Positions 2,025-47,800 of a stretch of 64,000 bases of DNA are shown here, one piece after another (the stretch's first letter is position 1; every line of letters begins with the position of its first letter). The notes beneath the pieces were generated by a model, which was not told where the DNA came from, searched no databases, and saw nothing but the letters and a program-made list of their open reading frames with translations. Both the position numbers and the translations under genes were made by a program. The stretch comes from Thalia democratica (taxonomy: Eukaryota): positions 47,554,001 through 47,618,000 of the forward strand of contig OZ241833.1 of NCBI GenBank assembly GCA_965202585.1. Reading direction: 5' to 3'.

Positions 2025-2962
2025 ACAGAAAAAAAGATAGAAAATAATGATGATGTGCATAAGATACAAAGTATTGATGATAAAAACAGTATAGTAATAT
2101 CTGGTGGATTGACAACAAAATCACAGAGCGGATCAAAAAATTGGATATTCAGTAATGCTGTTTACCTATTTGATTCAGTAATGCTGTTAAAACAAACTTT
2201 TATAGTTTACACTCAAAACTAAGTTCTTCAAGGTACAGTCATCAATCTGCTACTGTTGAAGGTAACATTTACTTATTAGGAGGTGTTAGAAATGACAGTA
2301 TATTATCCGATAATGAGGTCATAACAGTTGGTCAGAAGTTGACAGTTCCACCAATGCGTAACGAAAGAAAACTTTTTGGAATGTGCTCATTTGCCGGATG
2401 CATTTTTGTGGCCGGAGGAGCTCTTAATAATTTGGAAACTTCCGCGAAATGTGAAGTTTACAGCGCAGAGTGTGGCGAATGGAGTGAAGTCAGTAGCATG
2501 AACGCAAGCAGATGCGCTTTAGCATTGACATATTTCCAAGATAAAGTGTGGGCAATCGGTGGTGGTTTGAACATGAATGTAATGGACATGGTTGAGACGT
2601 ACGATTTAGGTGAGAACAAATGGACAACAGCTGACGTCAGACTTAATCAAAAACGATACGGTCACAGGGCTGTGACCCACGAAAAAAAAATATTTGTTAT
2701 CGGTGGTTTATGGTTTAAAAAAACATGTTCAGTTGAAGTTTATTCGATCGTGACGAATCAGTTCACTTCAGTGGCTGAAATGAACATATCACGCTCGTTC
2801 TTTGGATGCAGTTTACTTGGAAATAATATTTTCGTCTTCGGGGGTTTTTTGAACAGAAACCAAATAAGTGATTCCGTTTATGACATTGAAAACGATTTTT
2901 GGTCAAAAGATCCAAGTTTACCTCTCCCGTTAGCTTCTTTTGGTTGCTCAAATAACAATTAG
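2025..2962 (+). pseudogene. Kelch-repeat (six-bladed beta-propeller) gene, intronless, frameshifted near its 5' end
   Basis: The frame of ORF 2339..2962 is open from 2174 and has five kelch blades with GG + Y/W signatures (RYSHQSATVEGNIYLLGG, IFVAGG, VWAIGG, IFVIGG, IFVFGG). A sixth blade (SIVISGGL...NAVYLFD) lies in another frame at 2025-2174 and is joined if the 11-nt insertion 2175-2185 is removed. The listed start at 2339 is TTG, not ATG. Confidence 0.8.
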
Positions 2963-12663: not shown

Positions 12664-14184
12664 TTTTTAGACTAATTCAACATTTTTTTATTTTATAGTT
12701 TTTTATTTTGCTTTAATTTTTAAGAACTAGGGCAAGTAGCGTTGTTCGTTAATAAAAATTACTTATTTTCCTACATTGTCCTAGCGAAAAGAATGAAGAA
12801 GAGTAAAATGTGATTCTCTTCTAACCAAAAGGAAGAGTAGATTAAAGTGAGGTTCTCTTTTAAAATGGTAGGAAGAAGAAGTCTAATGGAATACCAGTTT
12901 AACTGTAATGTGTTAGTTGAACATCAAATATTATAAAACCAATCAACCAAAAAGTAAGTTGATCTGAAATAAGTTTACATTTTTAATATAAAGCTATAAA
13001 AACCAGCCACAGTGTAATTGCAGTGATATTCTAGTCAGTCAAGACCTTACAGATTAACTTCATATCTCAACATGTTTGTTACTTTATTGTTCATTGTGAA
13101 GTTATTTTTTAATTAATGTTTGTTAGTTATAATTGATTTTTTTGTTTAAATTCCAAGCAGATAACTCTTAATTTAATTAAATATTGTTATAGTTAATAAT
13201 ATATTCCTATTAGATTTAACTTCTGTGTAAAAGTTTTGACAACATTAACAATATTTTCTAAAGTATTACATCTTTTATTTTTTAGTGTTTGATATGTTCT
13301 TTAATATATAAACATAACGACCAAAAGTCATTCCTAGCTTTCACAAGTAGCATTAAATGTCTTTAGATATCATTTAGTTCTTAGTATATTTCAAGTTTAG
13401 TTATGGTTTTTAGTTTGGTCCTACACTCTAAACTATAACCTTACAACTTAAAGTTGTTTTCAACACTATTGAGTTGAGTTTTTAAAAGTATTACAAATTT
13501 GTAAGAATTTAAAACATGGTTTGCCAAACTAAGCCAAGTTGCTCCCTTCGGAGAATGGACAGCAAAGAAATTATAGAAATTTAGGAAACCATGGGCAGCA
13601 AAAGGGATAAAGGGGGGGGGGGGGCACATGGGGGTCTATGCGGTCATAAATTGGGACTTAAACTAGATAATTTGAATTTGATGATCAAAAGCAATAAAAA
13701 ACTGGTCATGGGCGATTTTTAAAGGTAACATTAAACTTATACTAGATTTTATAGGAAAAATTTAGGAAATTTAGGGAGACAAAAGTTGTAGAAGGGATAG
13801 CCACAAGGTCAAAACTTGAAATTCACTCACTTACACTAGATATTTTGAGTTGATAATAAAGATCAATAAAAAGGTCTTATGCATTTTTAATGATAGTTTT
13901 TTATGAAATCTATAAAAGAGGAATAAAAAAAAAAGATTTGGAAACCTTGATTTAATAAAAAAACATATGTTATATTTATAGTTTAACATTATTTTTGTCT
14001 TTGATTAGTGCATTTAGAATAGTGTTGAAATCTGCTGAGACAATATAAGAAAATATGTTAAGTAAATACATTATTTTTGAATAATTAAACTAACCTATAG
14101 TAATTTAGATTTAAAATAAATTGAAAAGCTTTATTTTCAACGAATGAATATTTTTAAAGGAAATATATTTTAAGTCATACAAAA

Positions 14185-14859
14185 ATGGATTTTGAATGCA
14201 GTATATGTTTAGATAATTTGTTTTCAGTAAACACTGATGTTTCTGTTACGCAATGTGGTCATGTTTACCATAAATCTTGTTTAGAAAATGCAACGCAGAT
14301 TAACAAAAGATGTCCAATATGTAATACTGAAAACATAAACGTTGTAAAGACCATATATCCAAATGTCTATAAAGAACTCAATTATAGTTGCTGTTCAAAA
14401 GATACAAAAGAATTTATTGAAGAAATTTAAGACAACGAAAGAGAAAAAAGAGTAATATTTCTAAATATGATTAAGAAACTAGACAAAGAAAACACAAGTC
14501 TAAAAGAAACTAATACAAATTATCAAAACAACCTTAAAAGTGTTAAAGTGTTTCTACAATGCTTCAAGAAAGATATTAAAAACCTGAAAATAAAAAACGG
14601 ACTAATCACATCAGAGAAGAATATCTTGTTATCTGAAATAAGAAAGTTTGACAATGGCAATGAAAACGTAACCGAAATGTTAAATGTCAAGTATGGAAAA
14701 CAAATTGAGCAAGATTATCGTAATGATAATCTTTCTGGCGAAAACTTTTATGATTAATGTAATGATAGTTGTTGTAGCGATGAAACTTATTTTTCTTGTA
14801 ATGATGATTGTTCCAGATGTAAAGAATCTTTTGTAAATAAAGGTTCGTTAGATTTGTAA
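14185..14859 (+). pseudogene. RING-H2 finger + coiled-coil (TRAIP-like architecture) E3-ligase gene with two in-frame stops
   Basis: CSIC...CGHVYHKSC...CPIC (C3H2C3) at the N-terminus. ORFs 14185..14430 and 14467..14757 are the same frame, separated by one TAA (14428-14430). A second TAA (14755-14757) precedes a Cys/Asp-rich tail ending at 14859. A possible phase-1 intron 14843-15061 leads to a further exon at 15062. Confidence 0.8.
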
Positions 14860-15193: not shown

Positions 15194-16855
15194 ATGTCAC
15201 CAGTGACGATGGTGTCCTTGTCATAACGGTGAGCGATGACGTCACGAAAGTGAGTCTGGCGTTCTACGAGGATGACGTCAAAGTTGGTGAGGAGAATGTG
15301 TTCGAGAGTTTGAACGCCGTGAACAGGATCAGACTGTACCCCCTCATGCCAGTTTGTTTAAGTTTATATAAGATAAATTTAAGGTAAAAAGCTAGTTATT
15401 GAAAGCATCAAAATGTTATATGTATTTAGAACAAAAACAATCTGTATTTTTAAATGCTACTGTACATTTTCCCGTTTCACTTCTAACTCATGCAAGGTGT
15501 TGAGTAAAAAATATTTTATAAAACACATGAAAGTTATTATTACCTTCAAGTTTTTTTTTAATAAACGTGGACAAAAGAATGCATTTTTATGTCTTTATTG
15601 TAAAATTAATATTTGTCTCACTGCTTAAGCTGGCTAATCACTACTTCAGTTTTTAGTTTCAAGTTAATCAAACTGTTCTACTCAAGTCTTGCATCAATAA
15701 AGACAACTTTTAAATGTTTATACAGAGACCTCATACAAGATGGTTGCCAAATTTTACTTCAAAGACAACCGAGTCCGCTCCAAAGAAGTCTCCTTCATGA
15801 CGCAAAAGAAACTACAAGTTGAAATGTCAACTGAGCAACCATCAACAGTTTAAATGTCAACCGAAGGCACAACAGTTTAAATGACAACAAACCAAATAAC
15901 AACTCAAGGAGAAATGATCTTCGACCTGTCGGTTGAAAACGTCACCGATAGCAGCGCAGTAATACTGATGACAAATAGCAATGACGTCAGAGCTGTTGAC
16001 GTCATATTCGCGTCATCGGTGCTTCCCCAGCCCATCAGGCAACGACTAACGATGTTCAAGAAAGTTAACGTGTTCCGGTCCACATAGTTGCCTCCCGGTA
16101 AGGTTTTGATTTGTTTAGTTTAATTTTAAAAAATACATTCTGTACGTATACTATTGTATTAATCATTAGTTATATATTAGCTACCTTTGTAAAAAAAACT
16201 CATTTTTAGGGCACTTTACAGAAGTTAGAACTTAAATGTACGCTAAAAAAATTAAAAGCGTAAAACTTTACACACTACTCTTGCATTTTTAAACAATGGT
16301 CAATTTTTAATAAATAAAATTTACGTAAAATAACTCTATTTTTCTAAACATTAAAAAAGATAAATTCGAGGTGTTAAATTCAAATTTTCAAGTTTTTATA
16401 AAAGTATATATTTTATATATATTTTTTTATTCCTAAAGGTACTCTTTACAATGTCGACGATGTAGGTGAATTTTTTGACGAAAGTTTCCAGAGAAGAACA
16501 ATAGAGTTCAACACTTTTGAAGGTAATAATGCATTTTAGACGTCTGTTCTCTGTCTTTATTATTTTTATTCACTTATTTTTGTTAGACACATTACCATTA
16601 TTGTTTTTTTTAACTTGGTTTTTTTTAGATAAGTCACTTTTGATTATGACGTCACAACCAAGATGACCATCACATTCTACTTCTTGTTGCGCGAAGTGAG
16701 GTCATCAATGGTGAAAAATTTCTTGAAGTCGAGTGATGACGTCGTGAGGTACGTCGTCAAGCTGGCGATGGTCAGTGATGACGTCACGGACGAGAGAAAG
16801 GAGAACGTGATCGGCAGGGAGATAGAGGAGATGCTCTTCCAACTCACTATGCTTG
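15194..16855 (+). pseudogene. Inverted, decayed partial copy 1 of the giant gene (homologue of exons at 45.4-43.5 kb)
   Basis: Four exon copies: ~15194-15351, 15726-16098, 16439-16522, ~16630-16855. They match minus-strand exons 45492-45229, 44849-44478, 44093-44010 and 43799-43506. GAA>TAA at 15851 and 15878, a TAG near 16085, and a 1-nt loss at the first donor. Confidence 0.92.
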
Positions 16856-16998
16856 CTATGTCAAGGTGACCTTGAAGTATATTTTTATATTTTAGGAGAC
16901 TTAAGACTGTCAACAACAACTTCAAAAGATTTATTTTTAAAGCTTTTTGAAAAAAGAAAATGCATTGCGTACTTAAAGTTGAAAGTTATGGTATACTA

Positions 16999-17660
16999 TC
17001 AAAATCCACCCGCGTTCAAAATCCACCCGATCAAAATCCACCCGCATTCAAAATCAACCCGATCAAAATCCACCCGGTTCAAAATCCACCCGATCAAAAT
17101 CCACCCGGGTCAAAATCCACCCGATCAAAATCCACCCGAGTCAAAATCTACCCGATCAAAATCAACCCGAGTCAAAATCCACCCGATCAAAACCAACCCG
17201 GTTCAAAATCCATCCGATCAAAATCCACCCGATCAAAATCCACCCGAGTTAAAATCCACCCGATTAAAATCCACCCGGTTCAAAATCCACCCGATCAAAA
17301 TCAACCCGACTCTAAATCCACCCGTTTCAAAATCCACCCGATCAAAATCCACCCGATCAAAATCCACCCGGTTCAAAATCCACCCGATCAAAATCCACCC
17401 GGTTCAAAATCCACCCTATCAAAATCAACCCAACTCTAAATCCACCCGTTTCAAAATCCACCCGATCAAAATCCACCCGGTTTAAAATCCACTCGATCAA
17501 AATCAACCCGAGTCAAAATCCACCCGATCAAAATCCACCCGATCAAAATCCACCCGAGTCAAAAACCACCCGATCAAAATTCATCCGAGTTAAAATCAAC
17601 CCGAGTCAAAATCCTACCGACACAAAATCAACCAAAGTCTAAATCCAACCGAATCGAAAC
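16999..17660 (+). repeat. Left arm tandem array of TCAAAATCCACCCG(A/GT), roughly 40 units
   Basis: Seen directly; decays toward the interior. Confidence 0.95.
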
Positions 17661-19746
17661 AAGCACCTTGTTTATTTATTTCTTTTTAATTCAAGTATCA
17701 TTTAAACAAATCTCACCACTCTAAAGTACCAATCTTAAACAAGTTTTATTCAAAAAACACTTATAAAGTCTTGTATTTTTGTCCCTTATAAATTGACTTA
17801 AGAATATAAAAACTGTACTACAGATTGAACTTATTTTGTGAGGTTTTTTGAGTTGTTATTTGGTATATTTGCTTATTATAAGGAATTTTTGACAAAAATT
17901 ATTTTGTTTTTTTGATTACTGAATATAATTTTGAATAGCTACAGCCGGCAAGCAAATTAAAAGTTTTAGATTAGACAATTTTAAATTTAAAATTTAAACG
18001 TTAACCAAAAGAGATTAAATTTTATAAAACCACTCAATTAATCACTTTCAAAACTGGCCTTAACCTATTAATAAAATTAATAATACGATTGTTTAAGTTG
18101 ATACAGTCTGGTACAAAAATTTATAAAAATAACTTATACTTGAATTTAAACTCTCTTGTCTGAAATACATACTTTTTTTAATGAACCTATGTAAAAATAG
18201 AACATTTTAATAATAAATTAAAAATGTTATAAGTTTTTTTTCGTAATATTTGTTATAAATATAGTGTCATTTCTAAAAAACTCAACTTATTTGTTTACTA
18301 CTACAATTCTAAAGTATATAATTTCCCTAGCTCAAGTCTAACTACTAACTTTTTTAGTTGCAATTTACAAGCTATTTGAGCAAACTCAATGAATTGTAGA
18401 GTCGATATTTGTTTTATGTAAAGGACTTTAGAATTCATAGAAAAATGTTTAGCTTTTTAATTTGTACTATTAGTTAAAAACTAGCAAATTAAGTTGTTAT
18501 CTAATTAAAAATAACTTATAACTTTAGTTACTTTAGACGAAACTATTTTTAGTTTTTTCAAAAATAGATGGTTTATAAAAAAAACATTTAATAAAATAAA
18601 ATTCAATTAACTTAAACACTTTGAAAAAAAGATAATAGCAGCTAAAATTATTGTATAAATTAAAAAAAATAACTAAAAAATATTTGTAACAAAAATTAGA
18701 TAGAAAACAATAAAATTGTTTTAAAACTGTTATTGATTTCTTACATATTCCTCATTTATATTTTTAGTAAATTAGTTTTCGTATTTTTATATTAAAATTT
18801 ATGTTCTGTTTTTAAAAATACTAATAAAAGAAACGTCAATAAATTGTTTACTAAACGACAAATAAAAGCGCTCAAAATATTTGGTCCTAATTCCTCTTGC
18901 ACGAACATACCTTAAAGTTATCGAGTCGCACACCAAAAATATCTTTTAACGTCTTTTCCACGTCAAAAACAATAATGTTTAAAATATAATTAATAGGTGA
19001 TAGTTTTTCCAAATTTAACAAAGGATTTTTATTTTATTATCACGTAGCAATTTTATATTATTCTTTATCTATATTTTATTTTTTATAAACACTGTTAGTT
19101 GAAATTTTTTATATAATAAAATATTGTATGTAATACTATTTTGAAATTTAAGTAAAGCACAAAACACAAAACTTTTTACATCAAAAAAAAAAAGCTCAAA
19201 AATTTTAGATTAATATTTTAATTTTCTTTTTGTAACATTTAATTAACATTTTCCATAAATTTACATTATTTGGTATTTGATTTTTGTAATTTTCTTTAGC
19301 TTAATAAATGTTATTAAAGATTCTTCTAATTTATAAACTTCTATAGTTTGGATATTTTAATTTACTATGAGTTATCCTTAGTAAATATTTTTATTTAATT
19401 ATGATTGACTTTGGGAAATTAAATTAGAAGGAAGTTTAAATGGATTGAAACTGAGCGTAATTCTTTTTTTATTTTTTTAACTTCTTTTTTTAAAAGTAAC
19501 ACCAACACTACTAACATTAATAAATTACAAACACTTTAAATACTTGTAAAGCTACTATGAATTTTTTTTTTAATGCTGTTTAATTATATTGTTTAACTTA
19601 TTTTTTTAATTATTTTATTAAATAAATTAAAATTTCTTTCTTTATAAATACTTACACTTTTTTATACCAATAGTTGTTTAAACATATAACTTTATTCAAT
19701 ATTACAAAATTCTATTAGAAATTAATTCTTATTTCGAAAAAAAATG

Positions 19747-20262
19747 AACTCGGGTTGATTTTGATCGGGTGGATTTTGAACCGGGTGGATTTTGAACCGG
19801 TTGGAGTTTGATCGGGTGGATTTTGACTCGGGTTGATTTTGATCGGGTTGATTTTAATCGGGTGGATTTTGAACCGGGTTAATTTTGAACGGGTGGATTT
19901 TGAACGGGTGGATTTTGACTCGGGTGGATTTTGACTCGGGTTGATTTTGATCGGGTTGATTTTAACCGGGTGGATTTTGAACCGGGTTGATTTTGATCGG
20001 GTGGATTTTGAACCGGGTTGATTTTGAACGGGTGGATTTTGACTCGGGTGGATTTTGACTCGGATGGATTTTGATCGGGTGGATTTTGACCCGGGTGGAT
20101 TTTGATCGGGTGGATTTTGAACCGGGTAGATTTTGATCGGGTGGATTTTGACCCGGGTGGATTTTGATCGGGTGGATTTTGACTCGGGTGGATTTTGATA
20201 GGGTGGATTTTGATCGGGTGGATTTTGATCGCGGGTGGATTTTGATTGCGGGTGGATTTTGA
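19747..20262 (-). repeat. Right arm tandem array of (T/AC)CGGGTGGATTTTGA, inverted relative to the left arm
   Basis: Seen directly; exact reverse complement of the left-arm unit. Confidence 0.95.
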
Positions 20263-22319
20263 ACGTGTCCCGAAAGTTATATAGAACTTGTTCTTAATTA
20301 AAATTCATAAAAATCGAATATAAAGTAATTACAAATGAACTCTTGCTGTAATCTGTATATAAAATCTTTAAATTTCAAGTTTTAACTATACCAATCAACT
20401 CAGCTGTTTTAGTTTTTGTAAAAACTATTATCAAAATTGCCTTTTTTGTGGTAAAAAAGTCTTCTGAGTGACCTTTAATTGTTCTAAGTCAACCTGAGTT
20501 TTTTCAGTCCTTAAAAAAGTTTTTATTAAATTACAAAATTACTAAAAATCTAGAATTCAAGAAAAATTGCTTATAAAATAACAAATTATTGCAGCAAAAA
20601 CTAATACAAAATCTAAAAAATACTGTCCTGAGATTTTTTTTTAATCTTAAAAATATCATAGGAATTTACTAACGAAACAAATCTATGCTAATTAAGACTG
20701 AGTTTTGCTTGCTGGTTAAGACAAAACTTCAAAATACCCTGAGTATTATGATTTCAAAAATCGTTAAGTTTTATCTATCAATTTTTAAAACCAAACCTAT
20801 AAAAAACATAATGACTTTTATAACCAGAATATACAAACATACTAGTTTCAGGGTGACCACATATTAATAAAAATACTTACTAGATTTCCTGATTTCTTTA
20901 AGAATATTAATTTCCAGGTTTTGTGTGATTTTTATTCTTATGTATAAATAAAATAAAAGAAAAGACAAAGTTTTTAGGATTAAAAAGTGGCCTTATAAGT
21001 TCTGCTATGCTACTTTAAATATTGTTGTACGATAAACAAATTCTTATTAGTATAAAATGTTTTTTATCTTTTATTATGAAACGGTTTAAAATTTCAGATT
21101 GTCCAGTTTTTTTGAACAAAAATTTATGTTTTTATTTCTTAAATTAAACTTTTTTATAAAAATATTGACCCTTTAGTTTTACAAAATATTAAAACAGATC
21201 AGTTGAACTTATTGATGAAATAAAAAATTTAAATTACATTATTTTAAAAATGAATATAATTTTTATTAAAAAGAGTACGCTTGTAAAATGGGTTAATGCT
21301 TTTGTGAGTATGTACAATGTTTTTCTTTAAAATAAGGCTTTCAATGATTTCAAAAAAGTGTTTTCCTGAATAAAAATCAATAATAAAACTCTAATTAATT
21401 ATGAAATATTTTTTACCAAAATTTCTCGAGGTGAACTTAGAAGGGGTAATTAAATCAACGATTTTTTATTCCATTGCTAAAGTAAACATTTACAAATACT
21501 TAGGATTTATTACAGAAACTTTTGCAGCAGTTTAACAATTTTTTTTTCAATCTAAAAGTTTATTTTAAATTTTTTAGTTTGTGAAACTTTTTGGGTCTTA
21601 CATATGGTTGACTGATTATAGAATCTAGGCAGTTCTACATTTAAAAATTATAAATTTTTCAAAAGTATATATCGAATCAACTAAAGTTATAAAAGATATT
21701 CGGAGTAAATCATGAACTTAGAAAAACAAAAATTAAAAACAATTATGAGACATTTGAATAAATAAAATATAGAAATAAGTAATTTAACTTTTGGAATTTA
21801 CAAGAATTTATGTTAATAAAAAAAAGTTTTGTAGTAATCAACTTTATAAGAAATAAATAGCTCAAAAAACTAAACCACCTACAAAAAAATAATTTAATAT
21901 GTCTTACGTTAGATTATTCTACCTAATATAGCTAAACCTATAACAATATGACAATTGATGGTAAACAAAATTTTTATATGGCTCCATAAAAAAACATATT
22001 TTAGCTATGGAGTATGTGCAAGCCTAAGTAACTGTTTTATAAGATATTAAGTTAAAAAAACTGCCTAAAATTGTTTTGTAGTTTATGATTTTTTTTTCTT
22101 GAACTTGTTTTTTTAATTCTGCAGCCTTCAAAATAGCATGATGTAACGCTTATTTAAGAAAGTAATTTGACACTGGGTTGACGTATTACTTCTGCCACGA
22201 GTCCACAAAGCTGTCCGAAAAAATCTTATCTTTATATAAATTTATACTTATGGAATTATTATATAATTAATATATTTTTATGATGTATGTAAAATAAAAT
22301 AAATGTGCACAAAAATTTG

Positions 22320-23135
22320 CAATTGTTAATAAATTTGTCTCACTACTTAAACTGGCTCATACTTCAGTTTTTAGTTTCCAGCTAATCAAACTGTTTTACT
22401 CAAGTCTTGCATCAATACAGACAACTTTTAAATGTTTATACAGAGACCTCATACAAGATGGTTGCCAAATTTTACTTCAAAGACAACCGAGTCCGCTCCA
22501 AAGAAGTCTCATTCATGACGCAAAAGAAGTTACAAGTAGAAATGTCAACTGAGCAACCATCAACAGTTTAAATGTCAACCGAAGGCACAACAGTTGAAAT
22601 GACAACTCAAGGAGAAATGATGTTCGAACTTTCGGTTGAAAACGTCATCGATAGCAGCGCAAGCATACTGATGACAACTAGCAATGACGTCAGAGCTGTT
22701 GACGTCATATTCGCGTCATCGGTCCTTCCCCAGCCCATCAGGCAACGACTTACGATGTACAAGAAAGTGAACGTGTTCAGATTCACATCATTGTAAATGT
22801 TATAAGTTATTATCCATTAAAAGACATAAAATGCATTTTTTATCTATAAACTTAAAAAATTGATGATGATCAAGCTTACCATATTCCGATTCAGATCGCT
22901 GCCTACTGGTATAACTTTTATGATAAATTTATTAGTGTAATAGTTACAAAAATTATAATATAATTTCTTTTACTCATATACTAAATATTTTATTTATTTT
23001 TCTTCTATAACTTGCAACAAAGCTAATATTTATGCAAATTAATAGATCTTTCAAAGCATTTAAATGTCTAAAACTGAGGTATTTTCAGTAAAACTTCAAA
23101 CATATTTCATAAAAATTCTTATTCTTGATATGTTC
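22320..23135 (+). pseudogene. Inverted, decayed partial copy 2 of the giant gene (exon 44849-44478 plus both flanking introns)
   Basis: 22446-22796 matches the parent exon. Flanks match the parent introns (e.g. aaaaaattgatgatgatcaag...cgattcagatcgctgcct). TAA at 22569-22571 is shared with copy 1, and the donor site is deleted. Confidence 0.92.
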
Positions 23136-24150: not shown

Positions 24151-25587
24151 TTTGTTTAAAAGATAGTTTTTGTTTATTTTATTTTTGAATAGTTAAAGTT
24201 AAATATTAATGTGGCAGGTAAAATTACATATGATGTAACACACTCACTTTTCCCTAGAAAACGTTTATTGTTGCAATGGGTAGAGTTTGAGACTGATTTT
24301 TTTTTTACCATAAAAAAAAAAAAATAAAGTAGTTTTGTTAATTTTGGTATCTGGTGTTGTTAAAGAAAGGTTTCATTAAGTAAAATTGAAATAATTATAT
24401 CTGATTAAAATACTACAAAACATTTTTAGGAATTTAATAATTATTGAAACGTTAAAGTTTATCTATTTCTTTATAGTACGAGTTTAAATTTGAAGTTGTT
24501 AAACTATATTAAAAAAAAAAAAAATTGTATAAACCAGTAATGCTCTTTAACAAAAATAAAACTATATACTTAAGGCGTTGACTAATAGCTATTTTTGCAA
24601 AAGTATAACTATCTGCTTGAATGACTTGTATTTTTTTTATTCTTACAATTAACTTCACTATAGTTCATATATATAATAAGTAGTTTTTAAATCACCAAAC
24701 TAATAAGAAAACTCTGTTTATTAATTGATTTTAGAAAAAAAGCGAGATTTTTTTAAATTATAAAAAATAATGTTGAATCAATTAATAAAAAAATAAAAGA
24801 TAAAATTTTCTAAACAAGTAAAAAATAAATTGAAATTTTAACAAGGTTAGTACGTAAAAAATTTTAAACTAGTTTTGTTTGTGCTGAATTTTTCAAAATA
24901 AATGAAGTTGGCAGCACATACTTCATAAAAAAATAATTAAAAACAAAAAAGGCACATCATATACTTTTGGCCCGGAAATTACAAAAACATTCAAAAAAGT
25001 AGCGATGTTTTAAAGATAATTAAGTTTTAAATAATATAAGGTATTAACGAAATCGAAAAAAATAAAATTTGTTGAAATTTTATAACAGTATGACAAAAGT
25101 AAAACACACTGAAATATAGTAAAATGCTGTTAGATGAATGTTTATAATAGTTTTGTATTTTTATTGTACAGTTTTTAGGTAGACTTAAAAGCGCTAAAAT
25201 AGAAGTTATTGAGGTTAAAAACAAAAAATCTCATAACATGTTCTATACTAAGAATACTTTCAAAAAGTAAAGTTATTGAATCTAACTAAAAAACAGTAAA
25301 TTTAAAATAAAACTTATAAACGTTGAAAGAGCGATTTAAAGTTTTGCTATGACGTCACAACTAAACAACTAGGACTTTTCAGAGCTCTAATAACCATTAG
25401 AGGCCATCATAAAAGCTCAAAGGACAAAAAGGCAAGTTCTTGGCACTGCGGCCCCGACCGTAAACCTTTAACACATTTTTATATAAAAAAGTACCGTTGA
25501 CGAGACGCTCGTTCTGAAATTAATAAGAGAATAAATATTTTTGGAAGAGCTACTCAAGACCGCTTCTTTTTCCTGTCAAGTTTGTCT

Positions 25588-26816
25588 TCAGTCGTCCTTG
25601 GACGATTCCTTGTTGTACTTTGTCATCAGGTTTTCCCACTCAGGCAGCAGGTAATCGGCGAAAATCTCGTTGTCGACTTTGTACGCGTTCAACTCGCTTG
25701 CCAAAATCGCTCCTAAAAGTTTTAAAAATACTTGGATGAACGGTATTTTTTAACAATATGTATATTTAATAGCATTCAGTTCGTCTTTAAGAGTTAAATG
25801 TATCGAAAATAGGCTGTATTTAAATATTGTATAATAATAGGAGGAAACAAATAAAAGACAAATCTTTTATCAATACAATCGACTAGATTTTAAAAATATT
25901 TTTGTAAACCTTTTTTTTCAAACTCAAATAATTTTTTACAATACAATTATAGCAATGGTGTTATTTTTTTTCAGAAACATCTAAATTTTTTTTTTTAATA
26001 AACTGAATTGAAAGTATTAAGGTACCTAAAGTCTTAAAACTTTTTTAATTTTTATTTTCTACACTAAAAAACCTTAGTCGTAGGTTGGTTGCATACAAAG
26101 AATAGAAGTTTGTAATAAAAATATTAAACTAAATACACAAAAAAATAAGTTAATTCCAAACCTTTAGTCTTAGGTTGGTTGCATACAAAGAACAGGCATC
26201 CGTTGTAATCCACGTGCAGCTGCAATGTGACGTCACAATGAGGTCTGACGACCTCTAGTGGACATCTTTCAGGTTGGGGAGTCAAGTCGAGTTCGGTGGA
26301 CAGTTGGATCTGGTATTTGACGAAGGACACCGCCCATACGTTGAATGTTTGCAATCTATTAGAAATAGAAAAATACCTTGTAAATAGTTTTGTTTAACTT
26401 TGTTTCAATTAAGTTAAATTAGGGCGATGTCGCCAAATTTGGGGCTGTCAAGTAACCAGTAAGGCGGCAAAAAAGTAACCAACTAGATATCTAATAAAGA
26501 AGGCGAATAATTTTAAACTTCAAATTTTTCTCAAGAAATATAAATCTCTCCTTTAGTTTAATAATTCTTAATTACAATTTCAAAAGTGTAATGTTATTTT
26601 CGATCATGGATCTAACTAATCTGTAAAAATTTTGAAAAACTTTAAGTAATTTTTATTTTTTACTAGTAAGTTATTAAGTGAAACATTTTAGAGTGTAGTT
26701 ATACATATCTCTGTAATTAATTATTATACTTTACCTCCACTTATTGTATTGTTCTCTCCATTTGTTATTTTCATCATTTTCTGTGTACTCTACCATGTTT
26801 CTTGCGTTCGGATCAA
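25588..26816 (-). CDS. Last three exons of the giant gene: WAT-like helix, 4-Cys antistasin-like module, second WAT-like helix, stop
   Basis: Spliced translation: FDPNARNMVEYTENDENNKWREQYNKWRLQTFNVWAVSFVKYQIQLSTELDLTPQPERCPLEVVRPHCDVTLQLHVDYNGCLFFVCNQPKTKGAILASELNAYKVDNEIFADYLLPEWENLMTKYNKESSKDD*. Confidence 0.85.
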
Positions 26817-29800
26817 CTTTAAAAAAACAAACATGTTGAAAACTTTATTTCTGCATACGAAAATAAGTGCACGTATAATTTACATTGAAAAACTATTATG
26901 ATCTATAAGCAAGCAAACTGTAAAACAACAATAAAATAAAACTTACAAAAAATCTAACATACAGTTGAAAACTTGTATTTAATATTTTTATTTACGTTTT
27001 TGCTTATTTTTAATAAACTCACAGTCGATGGTGCTGACTTGTTTTTCTGCTCTCTTTGTGACCATTCCGTTAGTTCTAGCAACCAAATTGAAGTTGTACT
27101 CTTGTTCTGAAATAAAAAGCATAAGTTTTTGTTTTAGTTTTATGATGGTAGATAGCTAGCGTTCTAAAGTATTTGCCAAGATTCTGCAACATACTTTCTT
27201 AAAAGTAATTTAAACTTTAGTATGTTTGTTTCATGGATGTTGATAAATTCTTAAGTTTTGGTATTAAATAGATACAAACACAGTATACACTTTAACAAGA
27301 AAATTTTGGTGTATGTTGGTATAAACAAGCTTATGTTACTACTATTTGTAAAAATAAGTATAATCATTTACCAGGTTTGAGGTCATAGAAACAAGCGAAC
27401 GTGAAAGGTCCTTGCATGGCGTTCAATGTTTGGAAGTCGTCGGAAAATCCTTCGTATGAGTTCAAACTTGCTCTGTCCATGGATACTGTGAACGATTCTT
27501 TGGCGTTCTGAAAATAAATTTGTATCTAAAATTTTTCAAAAATATTCACGTAAATTAAAGAAAAACAATCAGAAGACTACACAAAGTATACTTGTGCAAA
27601 ATACTAAAAGTAATTTACTAAATAGTATACTTTAAAACCAAGTATTAAACTTAATAAAAAAAAAACCTTTTTGTTTCTGATTCTAACACACGCAGTTTCA
27701 TCATCTACTCTAATGATTTCAAAATCATCTGTAAAAAGTTTGTTACTTATCACTAGTTTGTTACTTATATTACTTATGTTCAAACCAAATGTTTTGTTAT
27801 ATTAGCCACGACTTAATGATTTCTAAGTTATTCGACGTTTATTTACATTTCTTGGAAAATAATAACTAAGTTTTTAAATGAAATCCATATAAGTTTCAGG
27901 ATTAGAAGTTGTTAATAATTTTCTAGTGTATAAAATATTGTGAATCAATGTTTCAAAGCATTCCGAAAACTTGTGTAAAATACATAATACCTACCAGCTT
28001 CAGTTGCAAATGATATTTTTTCTTCAATAAAAGTTCCATCCATAAATGCTACTTTAATTGAAGCAGTGAAGTTTGTGCCTGAGAAAAGTTTTTTTATTTT
28101 TAAGAACTTTTTATATACGAAAATCATTTTAAATAAAATAATTTGGTAAAATTTTAACGCATAATAAAGTTATCATCAAATATTTAACTTGTTATATCTC
28201 ACAAGTTATATAAATATACAGCTGGAAAAGATAAAGACTAAAATATATACTAGTTGACGTTTCCATAAAATGTATCAATAAAATAAACTTGATTAAATTT
28301 GCTTTCTTTGTAACTAAACAATAACTGACTTTACTTTCAAATTTTTTCTACTTTAACTAGTACAAGTGTTTAGATTACAAAACACTTTAACAAGTAACAC
28401 AACTCACTAAAGATTATTATAATTTATACTTTGCAGCATTGTTACCATATAGTGACACTTCAACATTATTTTTAAAAATTTTATTGAAAATACTTTATAT
28501 TTACACAAATGTTATTTTTTTAAAACTTTTTAACAATATCGTTACGCAATATTGACCGCATTAATTACATTTTCGTGAAAATATTTCAGTACTTCCGATT
28601 GCGCAAGACAGTTTTTTAATATAAGAGTTTTTTGAATGCCTAAACTTACCGCTTTAACCAGTAGCTGTACTACCGCTCGACATTGAAAGTTTAAAAAAGT
28701 AATATAAAAAGAGTTTAAAGTTGTTCAAACTTAAATAGCCTAAGCTAAAATTGAAATGATTAATACTTGATAATGTTTATATGAAAACCAACATATATTA
28801 AGTAAAAATGAACACAAAGTAAAAATGTTAAACATTTATTCTCTGAAGACTTTAATGTAGAAATTTTTACCTGTTATAAATTTTTACTACGCAAACACAT
28901 AGCAAATAGTAGAATGCTATTTTACAGTTATCCTTGTTTAACTTTATAAATAAAAACAAAAAACTTCAAATATTTCATCCTAACAAATTCTAATACCAAC
29001 CGGAAGCAAGAGGTCCGAGTTTGACGGGGGTCACCCTTCCCACCCTAGCAACCGTGATGACGTTCGGTTGCGTGGCAACTGAGCTGAACAACGCCACCTG
29101 GAACGTTGTGGCCGAACCCTCGGGCGTGGTGACCATCAGTTCCGCTTCGCTGGTTTCCACCCTAGTGATTTCAACTGTGACGTCATCGTATGAGTACGAG
29201 GAAGTAGTTTCCGGTTCGATGGTGGTTTGGGCCATGGTTGTCATTTCTATTTGTAGAAAACAAAATATATATTATTCTATTTATAATAATCAAGTGCGCT
29301 CGTTATAATTTTCGCTGGATGCAAATTGTTATTTTTTGAACCTTAAATCATAAAAGAAAACCATGACCGTAATACTTTGCGAAACAAAACTAATAGTAAT
29401 CATTGTAAGAACTTTATAAAAAAGGTTGATAACATAATGATATGTAATATAAAGTATCATTTACAAAGCAAGCACTTCAAAATATATCAATAAAACATCA
29501 TAATACCTGGATCAAATTCAGTAGTGAAGTTCTGGATGACTGTCATTGAAGTTTTATCAAACTTGTTTGCTACCAATACGACACGGTACCTTGACCCTTT
29601 GAACAAACAAAAATGAATTAGTAACAACTTTAAATTTGAACAAACGTAAACTGAAATTTCTTTAAATTAAAGTTTAACCTTAAAATGCAAAGCTGAACTT
29701 AGTTATCAAAAAATTACTTCAATTTTTTTCGTCAGTACCTTTTACAAAAAATATTTAGAGTGACTTTATAAAGTTGTCTTAGTAAGTAGTAAACTTCTTT

Positions 29801-41800: not shown

Positions 41801-44800
41801 GATGAAAATTTTGTGCTTGTAAACAACTTAAAGTGACAATGCTTGGTAAATCGAATTAATCGTGATAAATTATGAACACTTTAATAATTCACTTTTCAAT
41901 CTTTATTCAATGAAAAATTTGCAAAAATACACAGCTGAAGCAGCATAATACGTGCTGTATTGTTACGCAGAAAAAAAAAGAAATTGAAATAAAATACCTT
42001 CAGTTTTGAATGCAATGTTTCTGGATATTAAAAGTCTTCCATTTGAAAGAGCTCTTCCAGACATCATGTATCTTGTATCTGTAAGCATAAGCAAATTAAA
42101 GTTGTATACAAATACTATCTATCGTACATAGTTAAAGTATTAAGATAGCACTACAACAACATTTAATATACAATACTAATTTATACAAACTATACAACTA
42201 TTAAATAAATTGATTAAGATTAAATCTTAAAATGCTCTATGTAAATGAATTTTTGAATTTTTTAACTAGAAGACTACTTAATAGACAACAAGCTACAAAT
42301 ATTAAAACAACATAAAACAACGAGACAGACATAAAGTTATAAAATTAAAATGAGATATGGAATATGCTTAAAAAATAAGGATCACAGTGAAGTTTTTCAA
42401 GTTTTAAATCATGTTTACACAACCAATTAAAACAATGGATACTTTTAAGTAACTTTCAACACAAGTTAACAAACCAGAAGGAAGATTGTTGAACAAGAGC
42501 TCCATTGAACCGGCGCTCTTTGGAACTTTGAACACCTTCGGAACATTGCTTGGAAGTTTGTACAAGTACAACTCGTAGCTGTCTACCTGATTGGATGACT
42601 TGAGTGTGAACACCACGCTTGATGACGTCACGTTGCTCTTTGTGAACTGGAACTCGACTGGGAATGTTACAGGGGACGGAGTTGTTTCTTCGGTAGTGAA
42701 AGTTGTTTCTGTGTGGAGTTTATTTATTTACATTGTTTTCATATTAATTATTATTACTTGATAATAAGTGTTTATTTATTTTAAAGTTACCGGAGATTGA
42801 GTGCCTTGCTTTGTGGTGAAAAGTTTTTTGATTTTTTTTAGTTGTAAGCAAAGTATAATTTAATGTATTTGATAATTTAAAATACTTTGAAAGAATGCAT
42901 GCTTATGTTTATGCTTATTTTATTTTTCGTTTTAAAATATCTAGAAAAAGTAATCATTGGTTGGTTTAAGTACGTATGAGCTGCAAAAAGAATATAACTA
43001 ATAATATATAAAACTGATAATATATGAAAAATGTTTTGGAGTCGCTGTTGTTTTTGTGAATGATGACGCCAAAAAAAATCTATTAACTAACTATAACAAA
43101 TCTATGTATAATGAGAATCATAAACATATTTAACAACTTACCTGGTGTAAGAGTTCTGAAGAAGACGCTGTTAGAAATAACTGATCCGTCCTTCATTACT
43201 GCGTCTATTGTGAGCTCGTATGATGTGTCTGAATAAATAGAAAATCAACTTCTGTCTGATTTTTATTTCATAATAAAAACGTAAAAAAAGTATTAGTCTT
43301 TTAAATTTAAGAATAAAAGTTATTCAATACCTAAAGTGTTTGTTACTTCAATGAAAAACAAAAGGTACGTTAAACTCCTTAAACTATTTAGTATTGTTCT
43401 TATAACGCTTAAGAGATAATAAAATTTCTAAAAACTAATAGATTGTTATAAAAATTCCCAATAATTGTATTAGAGTTTTGATAATAAATAAATATTTTAA
43501 CAAACCTCCGGGTAGCATAGTAAGTTGGAAGAGCATCTCCTCTCTCTCCCTGCCGATCACGATCTCCTTTCTTTCGTCATTGACGTCATCACTCATCGCC
43601 AGCTTGACAACGTACCTCATGACGTCATCACTCGACTTCAGGTAAATTTCAACCATCGATGACGTCACTTCGCGCAACAAGAAGGAGAACGGGGCGGGAG
43701 TGACGGTCATCTTGGTTGTGACGTCATAATCAAAAGTGGTTTCTGACGTTTCTGTTGTTGGCAGCTCCGTGGTGGGCGTTTGAGTTGTTGGAATCTCACC
43801 TACAGTTATATAAACAGACCTAAAGATGTTTTGTTGAAAAATCTATAATTATTTAATGTGTAAGTTTGGTCATTTGACAAAATGTTTATGAAGTATTCAT
43901 TACTTAAGAATAATATAAACTAGTCTGCCAACTTTGAAACATCAATCAAAAAAAAAATTTCTTTAATAACCAAGAAAAAACAAAAAATATTACTGAAGTG
44001 TTAATTTACTTTCAAGAGTGTTGAACTCTATTGTTCTTCTCTGGAAACTTCCGTCGAAAAACTCAGCTACAGCGTCGACATTGTACTGAGAATCTGTAAT
44101 TTAGGTCAAGTTACAAACAGACCAAGAATAGGATTTCTTTATGAAACATGTTTGAAGTTATACTTAAAGTTCCTAAAGTTTGAGCATTTAAATGTTTATT
44201 TAGATCTATTAATTTGCATAAGTATTAGCTTCGGTGCAAGTTTTTAGAAAAAAAAGAAGTAAAAGCTTCTGTTTATGAATAAAACAAAGTATATTATGAC
44301 TTTAGTAAATATTAACTTAATGGAATTATTAGATTAATTTCACTATAAGGCAGCGATCTGAATCGAAAAATGTTAGCCTTCTTGATCATCATCAATTTTT
44401 TAAGTTTATAAATGATCAAACTGTTTATGTCTTTTAATTTATAATAACTTATAACATTTATTATTTTAATTATTCACCAGAAGGCAATGATGTGAATCTG
44501 AACATGTTCACTTTTTTGAACATCGTTAGTCGTTGCCTGATGGGCTGGGGAAGCACCGATGACGCGAATATGACGTCAACAGCTCTGACGTCATTGCTAG
44601 TTGTCATCAGTATGCTTGCGCTGCTATCGGTGACGTTTTCAACCGACAGGTCGAATATCATTTCTCCTTTAGTTGTCATTTGGATTGTCGTCATTTCAAC
44701 TGTTGTGCCTTCGGTTGACATTTCAACTGTTGATGGTTGCTCAGTTGACGTTTTAACTTGCAATTTCTGTTGCGTCATGAAGGAGACTTCTTTGGAGCGA

Positions 44801-47800
44801 ACTCGGTTGTCTTTGAAGTAAAATTTGGCAACCATCTTGTATGAGGTCTCTGTATAAACATTTAAAAGTTGTCTTTATTGATGCAAGACTTGAGTAGAAT
44901 AGTTTGATTAGCTTGAAACTAAAAACTGGAGTAAAAGCCAGCTTAAGTAAAGGAACAAATTTATTAATTATACAATGCAGACACAAAAAATGTTTTTTTT
45001 TTCCGCGTTTATTATATAAAAAACAAAATAAACATGAAGGTAATAACTTTTATGTGTTTTATAAAATATTTTCCACTCAATACCTTGCATGAGTTAGAAG
45101 TAAAAAATAAAATGTACACTAGCATTTAAATTTACAGATTGTTTTTATTCTCAATACAAATAAAATTTTGATGCTTTAAAATAACTAGCTTTTTACCTTA
45201 AATTTATCTTATATAAACTCAAACAAACCTGGCATGAGGGGGTACAATCTGATCCTGTTCACGGCGTTCAAACTCTCGAACACATTCTCCTCACCGACTT
45301 TGACGTCATCCTCGTAGAACACCAGGCTCACTTTTGTGACGTCATCGCTAACCGCTATGACGAGGATGGCCTCGTCACCGGTCACGTTGGCGGCCCTGAT
45401 GTCATAGTCGGTCATTTTGACTGACACTTGGGTAGTCTTGTCGTCCTGAATTGTGGTTGGCTGGTGGGTAGTTGGTTGCGCTGTGGACACTCCTTGAAAA
45501 ATTTAAGATGTTTTGGTGACTTTTGAATTAATTTCTACATATCTTTACTTAAATAGTTGTAACTATATGCTTAAAATTAAATTTTTAGTACTTGTTATCC
45601 TAAGACAACAAAAATACAGTTAAGAAAAAAGAGTTTGTTATATACCAACAAAAACCAGTCTATGTCATGTCTACAAGTTTATTTATTTAGTTATTAAGCT
45701 TTTTTTAAATGGGTTGTTTGATGATTCGTATAATAACTTACTATTAGACTGAAATTTAACTTCTTTTGATTCTGAGCTTCCGTCTTTCAAGTAGAAGATT
45801 GCCTTCATTGTAAAGTCTGAATCTGTTTACAATATAAGGATCATAAAACTGTAATCTCAACCAACCTTAGTTTAAGTGTTTAATTATTTATATAAATATA
45901 TTTTTTTAAAATATGTACTTAAAGTTTTTGATAAAAAATAAGTTTAGTTTCAACAAAATCATTAATGACTTAACCATATGAAAACGACTTAATCTTTAAA
46001 ATAAACAATGGTTAAAATTGATGAAACAAGTTTTAAGTCTATTTACTGAATAATAAAAAAAACAATAAAAATACTGACTAGGAGGCAGAGGCGACAATTT
46101 GATGTTGTTGATCTTCTTGAACTCCGTTAGTTTGTTCTCAATGGGACTATCCAAGTAATCCGCCATGAACAGTAACGTCACTCTGATTACGTCATCATTG
46201 GTAGTCATGACGATGATGGCCGAGTCGTCGGTGACGTTCAATAAACGGATGCCGTAGGTTTCCGTGGCAGCATCAGTGGTTGTTACCATGACAACGTTTT
46301 CCATGGTCGTGGGCTCAGTTAGCATGTATACGATTGTCTCAAATGATTCGGTTGTCTCTGAAGATGTTATCTTTTCAGCAGTAGTAGATCTCTGTGTTGT
46401 TGATTTCTGCGTTGTAGATCTTTCAGTGGTAGATTTTTCTGTTGTCTTTTCATACGTTTCTGTAGTTCCAGGCATTTCTGTTGTTTCTGTTCGTTCAGTC
46501 GTTGCTTCTTGAGTTGTTGATGCAAAAGCGGTGCTTGCCACAAGTTTTTCACCTGTTTAATAAAATTAAACTTTTAATTATTATTTTATGAACCTAATAT
46601 TTGAGTCAAACTGTTTACCAGTGTGCATGATTAGCATATCTAACCGAAATGCTGATATAACCTAAAAAAAATAATAAAAACAATAAACAAATTAAAAGTG
46701 TTTTACAAGAACTATTACTTAGATTATCTATTTACCACCAGTTATAAATAAAAACCTAGTTTTCGCAATGTCGTAAAACAGTAAACATCAAAGTTTCATA
46801 TGCTGATCTCGGATAAAAAAGTAACAATAAACTGCTGATTATACACATATCACACACATGCTTACCTTGTGTCTTGAACTCCAAGTCATCGTACAGATAA
46901 GAACCGTCTCTGAGTTTGGCCTCTCCAACTATTCTGAAGTCACTTCCTGCAAAAATATATTTTATCAGTCTAAAAACTCTTTTCGAATGAATCTAGCATT
47001 TTTAAATAAAAAAAGGCAATTAATAAAGAAACACCTTGTCTTTATTCGTTCAGCTTATTTTAACTACTCATTTTAAAATTAGCTTTGATCAAGCTTTATT
47101 GCAAATGAAAAAAGTGATTCTGCTTATACTTTTTAGTTCTGGTTTGTACACTTGATTAAAACCGTTTTATGCAACTAAAAAAAGCTGTATGGTTTGAGTT
47201 AACAGTCACAAGCTAAATCTAACACAATTTTTTTATTTAACTGAGAAAAATAATAATACTGAACCTTGCGGTAATGGGGACAGTCTGACGTTGTTGACCC
47301 TCATCACCTGGTCAATGTTGAACACGTTGGGCTCGTCGGAAGTGGGCACGTAAAAGTACAGTTTGATGTCAATTACGTCATCGCTCGTCACAATGGCGAT
47401 CATGGCGTCTCTCTCGGTGACTTCCTTGACAGACATTTCGAAATCGACCCTGATTGGTGTTTCGGTCGTTTCAACAGCATCTGTTGCGCTTTCTTTCAAC
47501 TCACCTGATGGGATAATGAAACGTTACGTCTAACATAATAGCTATTTTTTGAAACAAAAGTAATAGTTATTATAAATGATTTTGATAGTGTGATGTAAAA
47601 ACGTAGGTAGAAAACGATTGTTTTATGCTTTCCATAAGTTGTTAATGACTTAAGAAACTTCTTAGTTTACTGTAGTATTTTGTAAAAACAAACGTGTACC
47701 ACTTTTTTAGTTTTAGTTTGTGTTTTATCTTACAATTAAGCAAATAGCTAACTCGGTTTTTCAGTTGTAAATTGCTTCTGAGTAGTAGATTCTTTCCGAG

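Follow-up and report, generated by a model that had tools for sequence, protein, structure and literature searches.

Does the WAT peptide of cholinesterases also close proteins that are not cholinesterases? The question is raised by the end of a giant gene in a 64,000-nt stretch of Thalia democratica DNA (the window; coordinates below are positions in it), where exons on the minus strand encode a C-terminal tail with two ladders of aromatic residues. An earlier note had proposed that a cholinesterase tetramerisation module was reused in this tail to assemble or anchor a very long extracellular rod. The analysis described here puts somewhat better than even confidence in another reading, in which the tail is a tunicate-restricted C-terminal assembly domain consisting of two ladder helices and a disulfide hairpin, and in which its resemblance to WAT is likeness and not membership.

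Exons of the tail and the protein that carries it

The window is AT-rich, with 29% G+C overall, and the exons at the tail end of the gene are short. From the last FN3-like domain to the end of the transcript they are as follows.

27372..27525, minus strand: exon for most of the last FN3-like domain (...FTVSMDRASLNSYEGFSDDFQTLNAMQGPFTFACFYDLKP); RNA contigs span 27372-27507, and the 5' end of the exon is not fixed
27023..27106, minus strand: exon for the end of the FN3-like domain (EQEYNFNLVARTNGMVTKRAEKQVSTID); joints 27106/27372 and 26816/27023 are present in RNA contigs of runs X1-X3
26735..26816, minus strand: exon A, linker and N-terminal half of helix 1 (FDPNARNMVEYTENDENNKWREQYNKW, then a split Arg codon); from sequence and RNA joints
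26162..26355, minus strand: exon B, C-terminal half of helix 1 (LQTFNVWAVSFVKYQIQL), proline-rich loop and four-cysteine beta-hairpin; from sequence, RNA joints and homologues
25588..25712, minus strand: terminal exon, helix 2 ((G)AILASELNAYKVDNEIFADYLLPEWENLMTKYNKESSKDD) and stop; from sequence and RNA joints
25400..25587, minus strand: 3' untranslated region; X1 RNA contigs run 25400-25680 unbroken past the stop codon

Once spliced, the last FN3-like domain is followed by a linker, NNKWREQYNKWRLQTFNVWAVSFVKYQIQL, the proline-rich and four-cysteine stretch, and (G)AILASELNAYKVDNEIFADYLLPEWENLMTKYNKESSKDD. The tail thus reads ...NNKWREQYNKWRLQTFNVWAVSFVKYQ..., then the four-cysteine stretch (CPLEVVRPHC...VDYNGCLFFVC), then ...NAYKVDNEIFADYLLPEWENLMTKYNKESSKDD and the stop. 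Exon A codes for W0, Y4, N5 and W7 of helix 1 (ladder positions are counted from the first aromatic residue of each helix), and the exon B peptide contains the proline-rich loop LTPQPERCP..VVRP.C and the hairpin VDYNGCLFFVC. The stop codon is TGA (25590-25588), and the start at 25610 given in the earlier note falls within the terminal exon. The product of 27372..27525 is homologous to the stretch of the Clavelina protein P0008 that directly precedes the P0008 tail.

The joints 27372/27106, 27023/26816, 26735/26355 and 26162/25712 each have GT..AG on the minus strand and are carried by contigs from three marine metatranscriptome runs (X1-X3) that are 95-99% identical to the window. A further run, X4, whose kind is not on record, has none of these joints; it is taken as DNA because its contigs also cover the introns. 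Two protein records agree with the model: exon B is 97% identical to the transcript-derived P0001 (269 residues), and P0017, a more divergent member of the P0001 cluster with 581 residues, maps collinearly to 31772-25591. The presence of all joints in the metatranscriptome contigs upholds the splicing that had been proposed for the exon at 26816-26735, on which the earlier model depended, and the peptide strings and aromatic positions given with that model are exact.

The intron that follows exon B contains an exon echo, at 26071..26103 on the minus strand. There the final ~33 nt of exon B and its GT donor recur almost unchanged (ttctttgtatgcaaccaaccta[a/c]gactaa(a)ggt), ~90 nt beyond the true donor, with two small differences from 26160-26193.

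The protein upstream of the tail is of a mixed extracellular type. Upstream exons located at 59-62.5 kb code for thyroglobulin type-1 (Tg1) repeats (Pfam E=7e-10 to 1.6e-4), and many Thr-/Ser-rich mucin-like stretches separate beta-rich units with weak fn3 matches. A cysteine-rich stretch resembles a TIL domain by eye only, without a match when this stretch of the window was searched against Pfam, and a TIL domain is present in the Clavelina homologue. No esterase domain occurs in the pieces scanned, namely the last 581 residues, seven open reading frames of the window and the Clavelina homologue. These results support the earlier placement of the tail at the C-terminus of a non-enzyme protein, and the host can fairly be called a giant secreted non-enzyme protein of Tg1/mucin/FN3-like type.

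A conserved tail in tunicates and its predicted fold

A HMMER search with exon B of 1.84 billion representative proteins gave four true matches (P0001, P0005, P0007 and P0008). One of the true matches is XP_076801649 of the ascidian Clavelina lepadiformis, a protein of 1,507 residues with the architecture CUB-MAM-LDLa-TIL...Tg1...mucin...FN3-like-tail, and it is because Clavelina carries this homologue that the domain is assigned to tunicates. Two others are exon-level gene calls on eukaryotic contigs (L001 and L002), on which the flanking exons were located. A fifth lineage (L003/L004) was recovered by a metagenome scan with the exon-B alignment. The five tail-bearing lineages, which are the window species, a close relative of it, Clavelina and two further contigs, share just 33-40% identity. 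The tail is split at the same two intron positions and phases in L001, L002 and L003, with the exon A intron identical in both respects, and the position of the stop is also shared. The gene on L001 is orthologous to that of the window and has corresponding FN3-like exons upstream, and L002 and L003 are closer to the Clavelina type.

The remaining candidates from these searches were discarded. Among the HMMER matches, P0003 and P0004 are repetitive proteins whose scores are built up over many stretches, and P0002 and P0006, their sequences unread, were set aside on the same pattern. Word-indexed protein searches with P0001, P0008 and the alignment A4 as queries added only fragments from near-identical species. 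No curated family matches the tail at the Pfam threshold, nor does any PDB sequence; the Pfam matches of the window's junction and exon peptides (DUF7697, Scm3) are chance, as are the phmmer matches of the tail to PARN and mL40 (E=0.8) in the PDB. The whole-tail profile picks up HIV gp120/gp41 in the PDB at E=0.13-0.9, which is judged a coincidence among Trp-periodic helices. In the E=0.13 alignment, the linker and helix 1 (DPNARNMVEYTENDENNKW…NVW; profile positions 10-53) pair with gp120 C1 of HIV-1 (6l1y, 8gpj); a chance alignment of this kind indicates that Trp-periodic helices yield twilight matches to unrelated proteins. As far as the searches reach, the tail appears to be restricted to tunicates, and it is apparently an undescribed, conserved domain of ~125 residues outside any curated family.

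The aromatic register is the most constant feature of this domain. In the window, helix 1 carries W0, Y4, W7, F12, W15, F19 and Y22, and the ladder of helix 2 is Y0, F7, Y10, W15, M19 and Y22. Across the five lineages W0, N5, W7, T11, N13, W15 and Y22 of helix 1 are invariant, with position 4 always aromatic and position 19 always hydrophobic. In helix 2 the invariant residues are F7, Y10, L11, P13, W15 and Y22, and its position 0 is occupied by W in three lineages (L002, L003 and Clavelina) and by Y in the other two (the window lineage and L001). The step of eight residues from the second to the third ladder position does not vary. The four cysteines of the tail are arranged C-x8-C-x12-C-x4-C, and the hairpin is conserved as C-P...P-x-C...D-[YF]-N-G-C-L-F-[FL]-[ILV]-C. 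Since ladder residues are invariant in five lineages at such low identity, the register is judged to exceed chance, and the orthologues keep the aromatics as the earlier note had required of them. The two helices align with each other in the forward direction only (forward 18.3, reversed 8.4), as would be the case for units that are paired or duplicated within a single domain.

Helix 1 and the hairpin are joined by a loop (window 26270-26225, minus strand; P0008 1425-1445) that is proline-rich and conserved as P-[DNQ]-P-x-x-C-P...P-x-C. The same loop is found in exon B of L001, L002 and L003, with 4-6 prolines per 16 residues, and it adjoins both aromatic-ladder helices. An internal proline ligand is a possible role for it.

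AlphaFold2 was run separately on the window-lineage tail and the Clavelina tail (34% identical), as monomers and with alignments that omit the exon-A fragments of L001 and L002, which MAFFT had misplaced. The same topology was returned for both: a helix of ~35 residues, the proline-rich loop with a short turn, a disulfide beta-hairpin, and a second helix of ~35 residues that spans the whole last exon. The strands lie at QLHV and LFFV. The window-lineage model has helices at 24-59 and 106-140 and strands at 82-85 and 91-94, with a predicted local distance difference test score (pLDDT) of 78.7 and a predicted template modelling score (pTM) of 0.71. The Clavelina model has helices at 22-56 and 103-138 and strands at 79-82 and 88-91 (pLDDT 67.5, pTM 0.56). 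The fold is therefore predicted to be an antiparallel helical hairpin capped by a disulfide hairpin.

Comparison of the models with known structures returned this general shape. VIA-align paired the tail with antiparallel helical hairpins and bundles, up to a Z of 8.0 for the TBK1 scaffold, a level (Z of 8 or less) that VIA-align itself rates as common for helical models. The modelled tail is like the TBK1/IKK scaffold-dimerisation domain and designed antiparallel coiled coils in having two antiparallel helices of ~35 residues, at a root-mean-square deviation of 2.9-3.6 Å over 80-114 residues (2.9-3.6 Å for the designed coiled coils). Prefoldin subunits, which appear among the weak Foldseek matches, share the order helix, beta-hairpin, helix; Foldseek found nothing in the PDB at E<1. 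The tail has no sequence relation to these antiparallel hairpins and differs from them in being extracellular, in its presumed disulfide bonds and in an unusually high content of aromatic residues. A feature search of the ESM Atlas returned generic Cys-rich families (score 0.65), and a shape search nothing above a TM score of 0.37.

Comparison with the AlphaFold DB led, for either model, to weak matches in the C-terminal ~120 residues of the same two proteins, F6Q8Z9 (164-291 of 298), SCO-spondin by name, and H2ZCM6 (529-653 of 658), a VWFA protein, at 14-20% identity, E=0.1-0.5 and TM scores of 0.32 or below. The SCO-spondin-named entry is the top match for one model and ranks third for the other (E=0.095 and 0.34). 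To judge by their UniProt accession ranges, both entries may be ascidian. On these model-based matches, the domain may close other proteins too.

Read together in the favoured way, these features would make the tail a joining device. Helix 1, ~35 residues long, presents invariant W0, W7 and W15 with aromatic or hydrophobic residues at positions 4, 12, 19 and 22; the proline-rich loop and the four-cysteine beta-hairpin, presumably with two disulfides, follow; and helix 2, ~35 residues from the terminal exon, brings the same 0/7/15/22 ladder. The aromatic stripes of the two helices would pack on each other and leave a hydrophobic surface, through which the C-termini of giant secreted matrix proteins could self-associate or dock. 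The tail could then be a joining knob, a functional analogue of the C-terminal knots that link mucins and VWF. It resembles the CTCK domain of gel-forming mucins, VWF and SCO-spondin in being a small, cysteine-containing C-terminal domain of a giant secreted protein of Tg1/TIL/mucin type and in its presumed joining job. It is unlike CTCK in being mostly helical and in having four cysteines, compared with the CTCK pattern of ~10-11, and the CTCK Pfam model does not match the tail.

Two other explanations account for the conserved ladders without assembly. One holds that the tail is a mere structural cap or pro-domain of the last FN3-like unit and that its likeness to WAT is coincidental. The very large amount of sequence examined makes one twilight motif match expected, and other Trp-periodic helices, those of HIV gp120/gp41 and mL40 above, score comparably by chance. 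We regard this explanation as improbable, given that a tail of 125 residues is strictly conserved in five lineages, that helices 35 residues long whose hydrophobic stripes run unbroken are typically those of association domains, and that the signal of helix 2 described below strengthens as lineages are added. The other takes the aromatic ladders as an exposed face that anchors the protein to the matrix without oligomerising it. The face would bind cellulose or glycan fibres in tunic or filter, in the manner of the aromatic strips of carbohydrate-binding modules, or else the surface of a membrane or micelle, like the amphiphilic T peptide. Tunicates make cellulose tunics; the hosts are secreted matrix or mucin-like proteins, the Trp/Tyr ladder is invariant while neighbouring residues vary, and a small disulfide-stabilised unit lies beside it. 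Such a face seems very unlikely here: it is pure inference, no Pfam carbohydrate-binding family shows similarity, known aromatic binding strips are on beta-sheets or knots and not on paired long helices, and the compact AlphaFold2 hairpin (pTM 0.56-0.71) suggests that the stripes are at least partly buried. The assembly domain remains the favoured reading of the ladders, and its strongest competitor comes from the cholinesterases.

Comparison with the cholinesterase T peptide

The WAT domain is defined by a small set of features. It contains a series of seven conserved aromatic residues (PMC1285061). Its three equally spaced tryptophans, W-x6-W-x6-W, form a 'WWW' motif that stacks on the prolines of the PRAD (PMC2212707, PMC1285061). 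A cysteine at -4 from the C-terminus makes inter-subunit and PRAD disulfides (PMC1285061, PMC2212707). In the [WAT]4PRAD complex the helices follow a heptad register and form a left-handed supercoil, running parallel around a polyproline II strand (PMC1285061, 10.1101/431288). Binding of PRAD or polyproline in a 4:1 ratio is a further feature of the domain. The corresponding Pfam family is AChE_tetra (PF08674), with a gathering threshold of 25 bits; it was searched among 24,736 Pfam models, and human WAT, whose T peptide is identical to PDB 1VZJ chain A, served as the positive control at 77.3 bits. Profile comparisons by hhalign used three database-verified WAT sequences, the T peptides of human AChE, Torpedo AChE and human BChE, with reversed WAT and heptad-preserving column shuffles as controls.

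Helix 1, on which the proposal of a WAT module had been centred, does not stand up to these comparisons. It has no AChE_tetra match at E<=10 in any of the five lineages. Its hhalign probability against WAT is 8-12% with a score of 16.2, a value surpassed by reversed WAT (18.1) and equalled in 11 of 100 heptad-preserving shuffles. The likeness of helix 1 to WAT is accordingly judged to be geometric only, that of one Trp-rich aromatic amphipathic helix to another. Two pairwise results are left out of account: Smith-Waterman scores with composition-preserving shuffles (p down to 0.0003) were rejected as evidence because such shuffling destroys helical periodicity, and a BLASTP alignment between the tail and human WAT, which scores 16.9 bits and includes a gap of 12 residues, is uninformative.

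Helix 2 gives a different picture. The earlier note had pointed out that the last exon repeats the register, and this exon provides the better WAT candidate, through the orthologues rather than through the window copy. AChE_tetra is the sole Pfam match for the last exons of L002 (E=0.0094, 16.1 bits) and Clavelina (E=0.048, 13.9 bits), both below 25 bits; the last exons of the window (searched to E<=10), L001, P0024 and L003 have no match to it. The hhalign probability of the helix-2 profile against WAT rose from 55% with five sequences to 81% after L003 was added, at P=1.2e-5 over 29 columns with a score of 25.2, which is nearer to WAT than to helix 1 (18.3). Reversed controls score 7-9 (reversed WAT 8.9) and heptad-preserving shuffles 12.1+-2.9, with 0 of 200 reaching 25.2. 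Helix 2 is in this sense the sole WAT-like candidate to survive the controls. A pairwise P of 1e-5, however, corresponds to E ~0.3 over a Pfam-sized library, and when the search was reversed, the helix-2 profile found no cholinesterase at E<=10 among 177,635 PDB sequences, a set that contains 1VZJ as well as AChE-T and BChE at full length. The proposed Pfam check of the tail therefore came out in part: two orthologues respond below threshold and the window copy does not. The similarity between helix 2 and WAT appears to lie in the twilight zone, where sequence alone cannot settle the matter.

The defining features were also compared one by one. No copy of the tail reaches the gathering threshold of AChE_tetra. 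Trp spacing is 7+7 throughout the verified WAT sequences and 7+8 in the tail, where helix 1 is W-x6-W-x7-W in five lineages and helix 2 is [W/Y]-x6-F-x7-W. The earlier note had put forward a putative C. elegans ACE-1 peptide with the spacing of the tail; the string, which occurs in none of the papers searched, scores 16.9 bits on AChE_tetra, close to the values of the L002 and Clavelina last exons, and a real C. elegans peptide of that kind would make 7+8 legitimate within the family. With one gap allowed, helix 2 fills 7/7 of the WAT aromatic positions in L002 and L003, 6/7 in Clavelina and 5/7 in the window. Helix 1 fills 5/7 in L001, L002 and L003 and 6/7 in the window and Clavelina, with the position-10 Tyr always missing; any aromatic amphipathic helix yields part of this pattern. 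The last exon contains no cysteine in any of six sequences, and hence none at -4.

Position in the protein and periodicity are informative as well. A separate terminal exon of 41 codons encodes helix 2, and the stop comes 6-10 residues past Y22 (8 in the window); in this respect helix 2 is like the cholinesterase T peptide, an extreme C-terminal peptide of ~40 residues from its own terminal exon. Helix 1 is not C-terminal, as ~90 residues follow it. The autonomy of either helix is doubtful because both are predicted as parts of one larger domain. The hydrophobic moment is at its maximum at 95-96 degrees per residue in both tail helices and at 102 degrees in WAT, which indicates that the stripes follow an 11-residue-type and not a heptad register. 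At +13, where the extra residue falls, helix 1 has an invariant Asn and helix 2 an invariant Pro; that a local break could restore the WAT register in two halves is speculation. By the defining features of the family, the tail domain is placed outside AChE_tetra. The aromatic spacing that had been offered as a WAT signature fails as one, being 7+8 with neither the cysteine at -4 nor heptad periodicity.

The tail and WAT are alike in being or containing an amphipathic helix with an aromatic series. They are unlike in that the tail is not joined to a cholinesterase and its domain also contains a second ladder helix and a disulfide hairpin. The literature searched, which did not cover key papers, contained no description of a WAT-like peptide outside cholinesterases.

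These results bear directly on descent from a cholinesterase T exon. In this explanation, a tunicate ancestor acquired the terminal exon through exon shuffling, a duplication perhaps gave rise to helix 1, and the tail tetramerises or is anchored by wrapping its aromatic helices around a proline-rich strand, which would be supplied by a PRAD-like partner from outside or by the P-x-P-x-x-C-P loop of the tail itself. It draws on the sole Pfam matches of the L002 and Clavelina last exons, on the rise of the hhalign probability with an added lineage and the failure of every shuffle to reach the observed score, and on the presence of all seven WAT aromatic positions in L002 and L003. The layout is also that of the T peptide, a terminal exon of ~40 residues with ~9-10 residues before the ladder and 6-10 after it, and the orthologues are more WAT-like than the window copy which prompted the idea. 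Yet all scores are sub-threshold, the last exons of the window, L001, P0024 and L003 are without a match, helix 1 fails its controls and the reverse PDB search is empty of cholinesterases. The central Trp of helix 2 is an invariant Phe, followed by the 7+8 spacing and an invariant Pro at +13, with no Cys at -4; at 95-96 degrees the left-handed supercoil of [WAT]4PRAD would need a helix break; and WAT is built of parallel helices from four chains, whereas the two helices of the tail belong to one chain and are predicted to be antiparallel. Capture of a T exon is thus given a modest chance, well short of even. The fuller proposal, in which such a descendant was moved onto a non-enzyme matrix protein, duplicated in the tail, and now assembles or anchors the rod by a WAT/PRAD-type superhelix, is considered unlikely; if true, it would be the first WAT module outside cholinesterases.

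The reading of the tail as an independent assembly domain with two ladder helices has to be held against several points. The similarity of helix 2 to WAT beats every control built, which independent origin alone does not predict. Four of the five AlphaFold2 models for the window species have a mean pLDDT of 52-59, the folding alignment is shallow, with 9 rows of which several are fragments, and AlphaFold2 run on monomers tends to self-pack helices that really pair between chains. Burial of the tryptophans, moreover, is inferred from the overall shape of the models.

Surroundings of the gene and meaning of the tail

Several other features accompany the giant gene in the window. An element bearing an open reading frame (…FKLIKLFYSSLASIKTTFKCLYRDLIQDGCQILLQRQPSPLQRSL…, then a Thr-rich stretch) is present in three copies, at 15610-16084 (plus strand), 22298-22793 (plus) and 44438-45049 (minus); one of them falls within the giant gene, on the strand that encodes it, and the element may represent either a block of exons that was repeated or a mobile element. 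Downstream of the gene, a tandem repeat open in all three frames (…KIHPIKIHP…, …QNPPDQNPP…, …KSTRSKSTR…) forms two inverted blocks ~2 kb apart, at 16826-17721 (plus) and 19718-20304 (minus). Also downstream, on the other strand, are a RING-finger-like open reading frame (CSICLD…CGHVYHKSCL…CPIC) with a coiled-coil-like continuation at 14158-14754 (plus) and a 262-residue open reading frame, kelch-like by eye, at 2174-2959 (plus).

The significance of the tail depends on which reading is right. If the conservative one is true, very large matrix and mucin-like proteins of tunicates end in a new C-terminal domain that takes the place of the cystine knot of vertebrate mucins and VWF. The domain would then provide a small, easily expressed and Trp-rich handle on how the networks of tunic, filter and mucus are assembled in pelagic and sessile tunicates. 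The WAT peptide has so far been viewed as the private appendage of cholinesterases. If the WAT reading is true, this tetramerisation peptide would be portable, a module older than its pairing with ColQ/PRiMA, and the 7+8 variant would show how far the aromatic/polyproline superhelix can be distorted.

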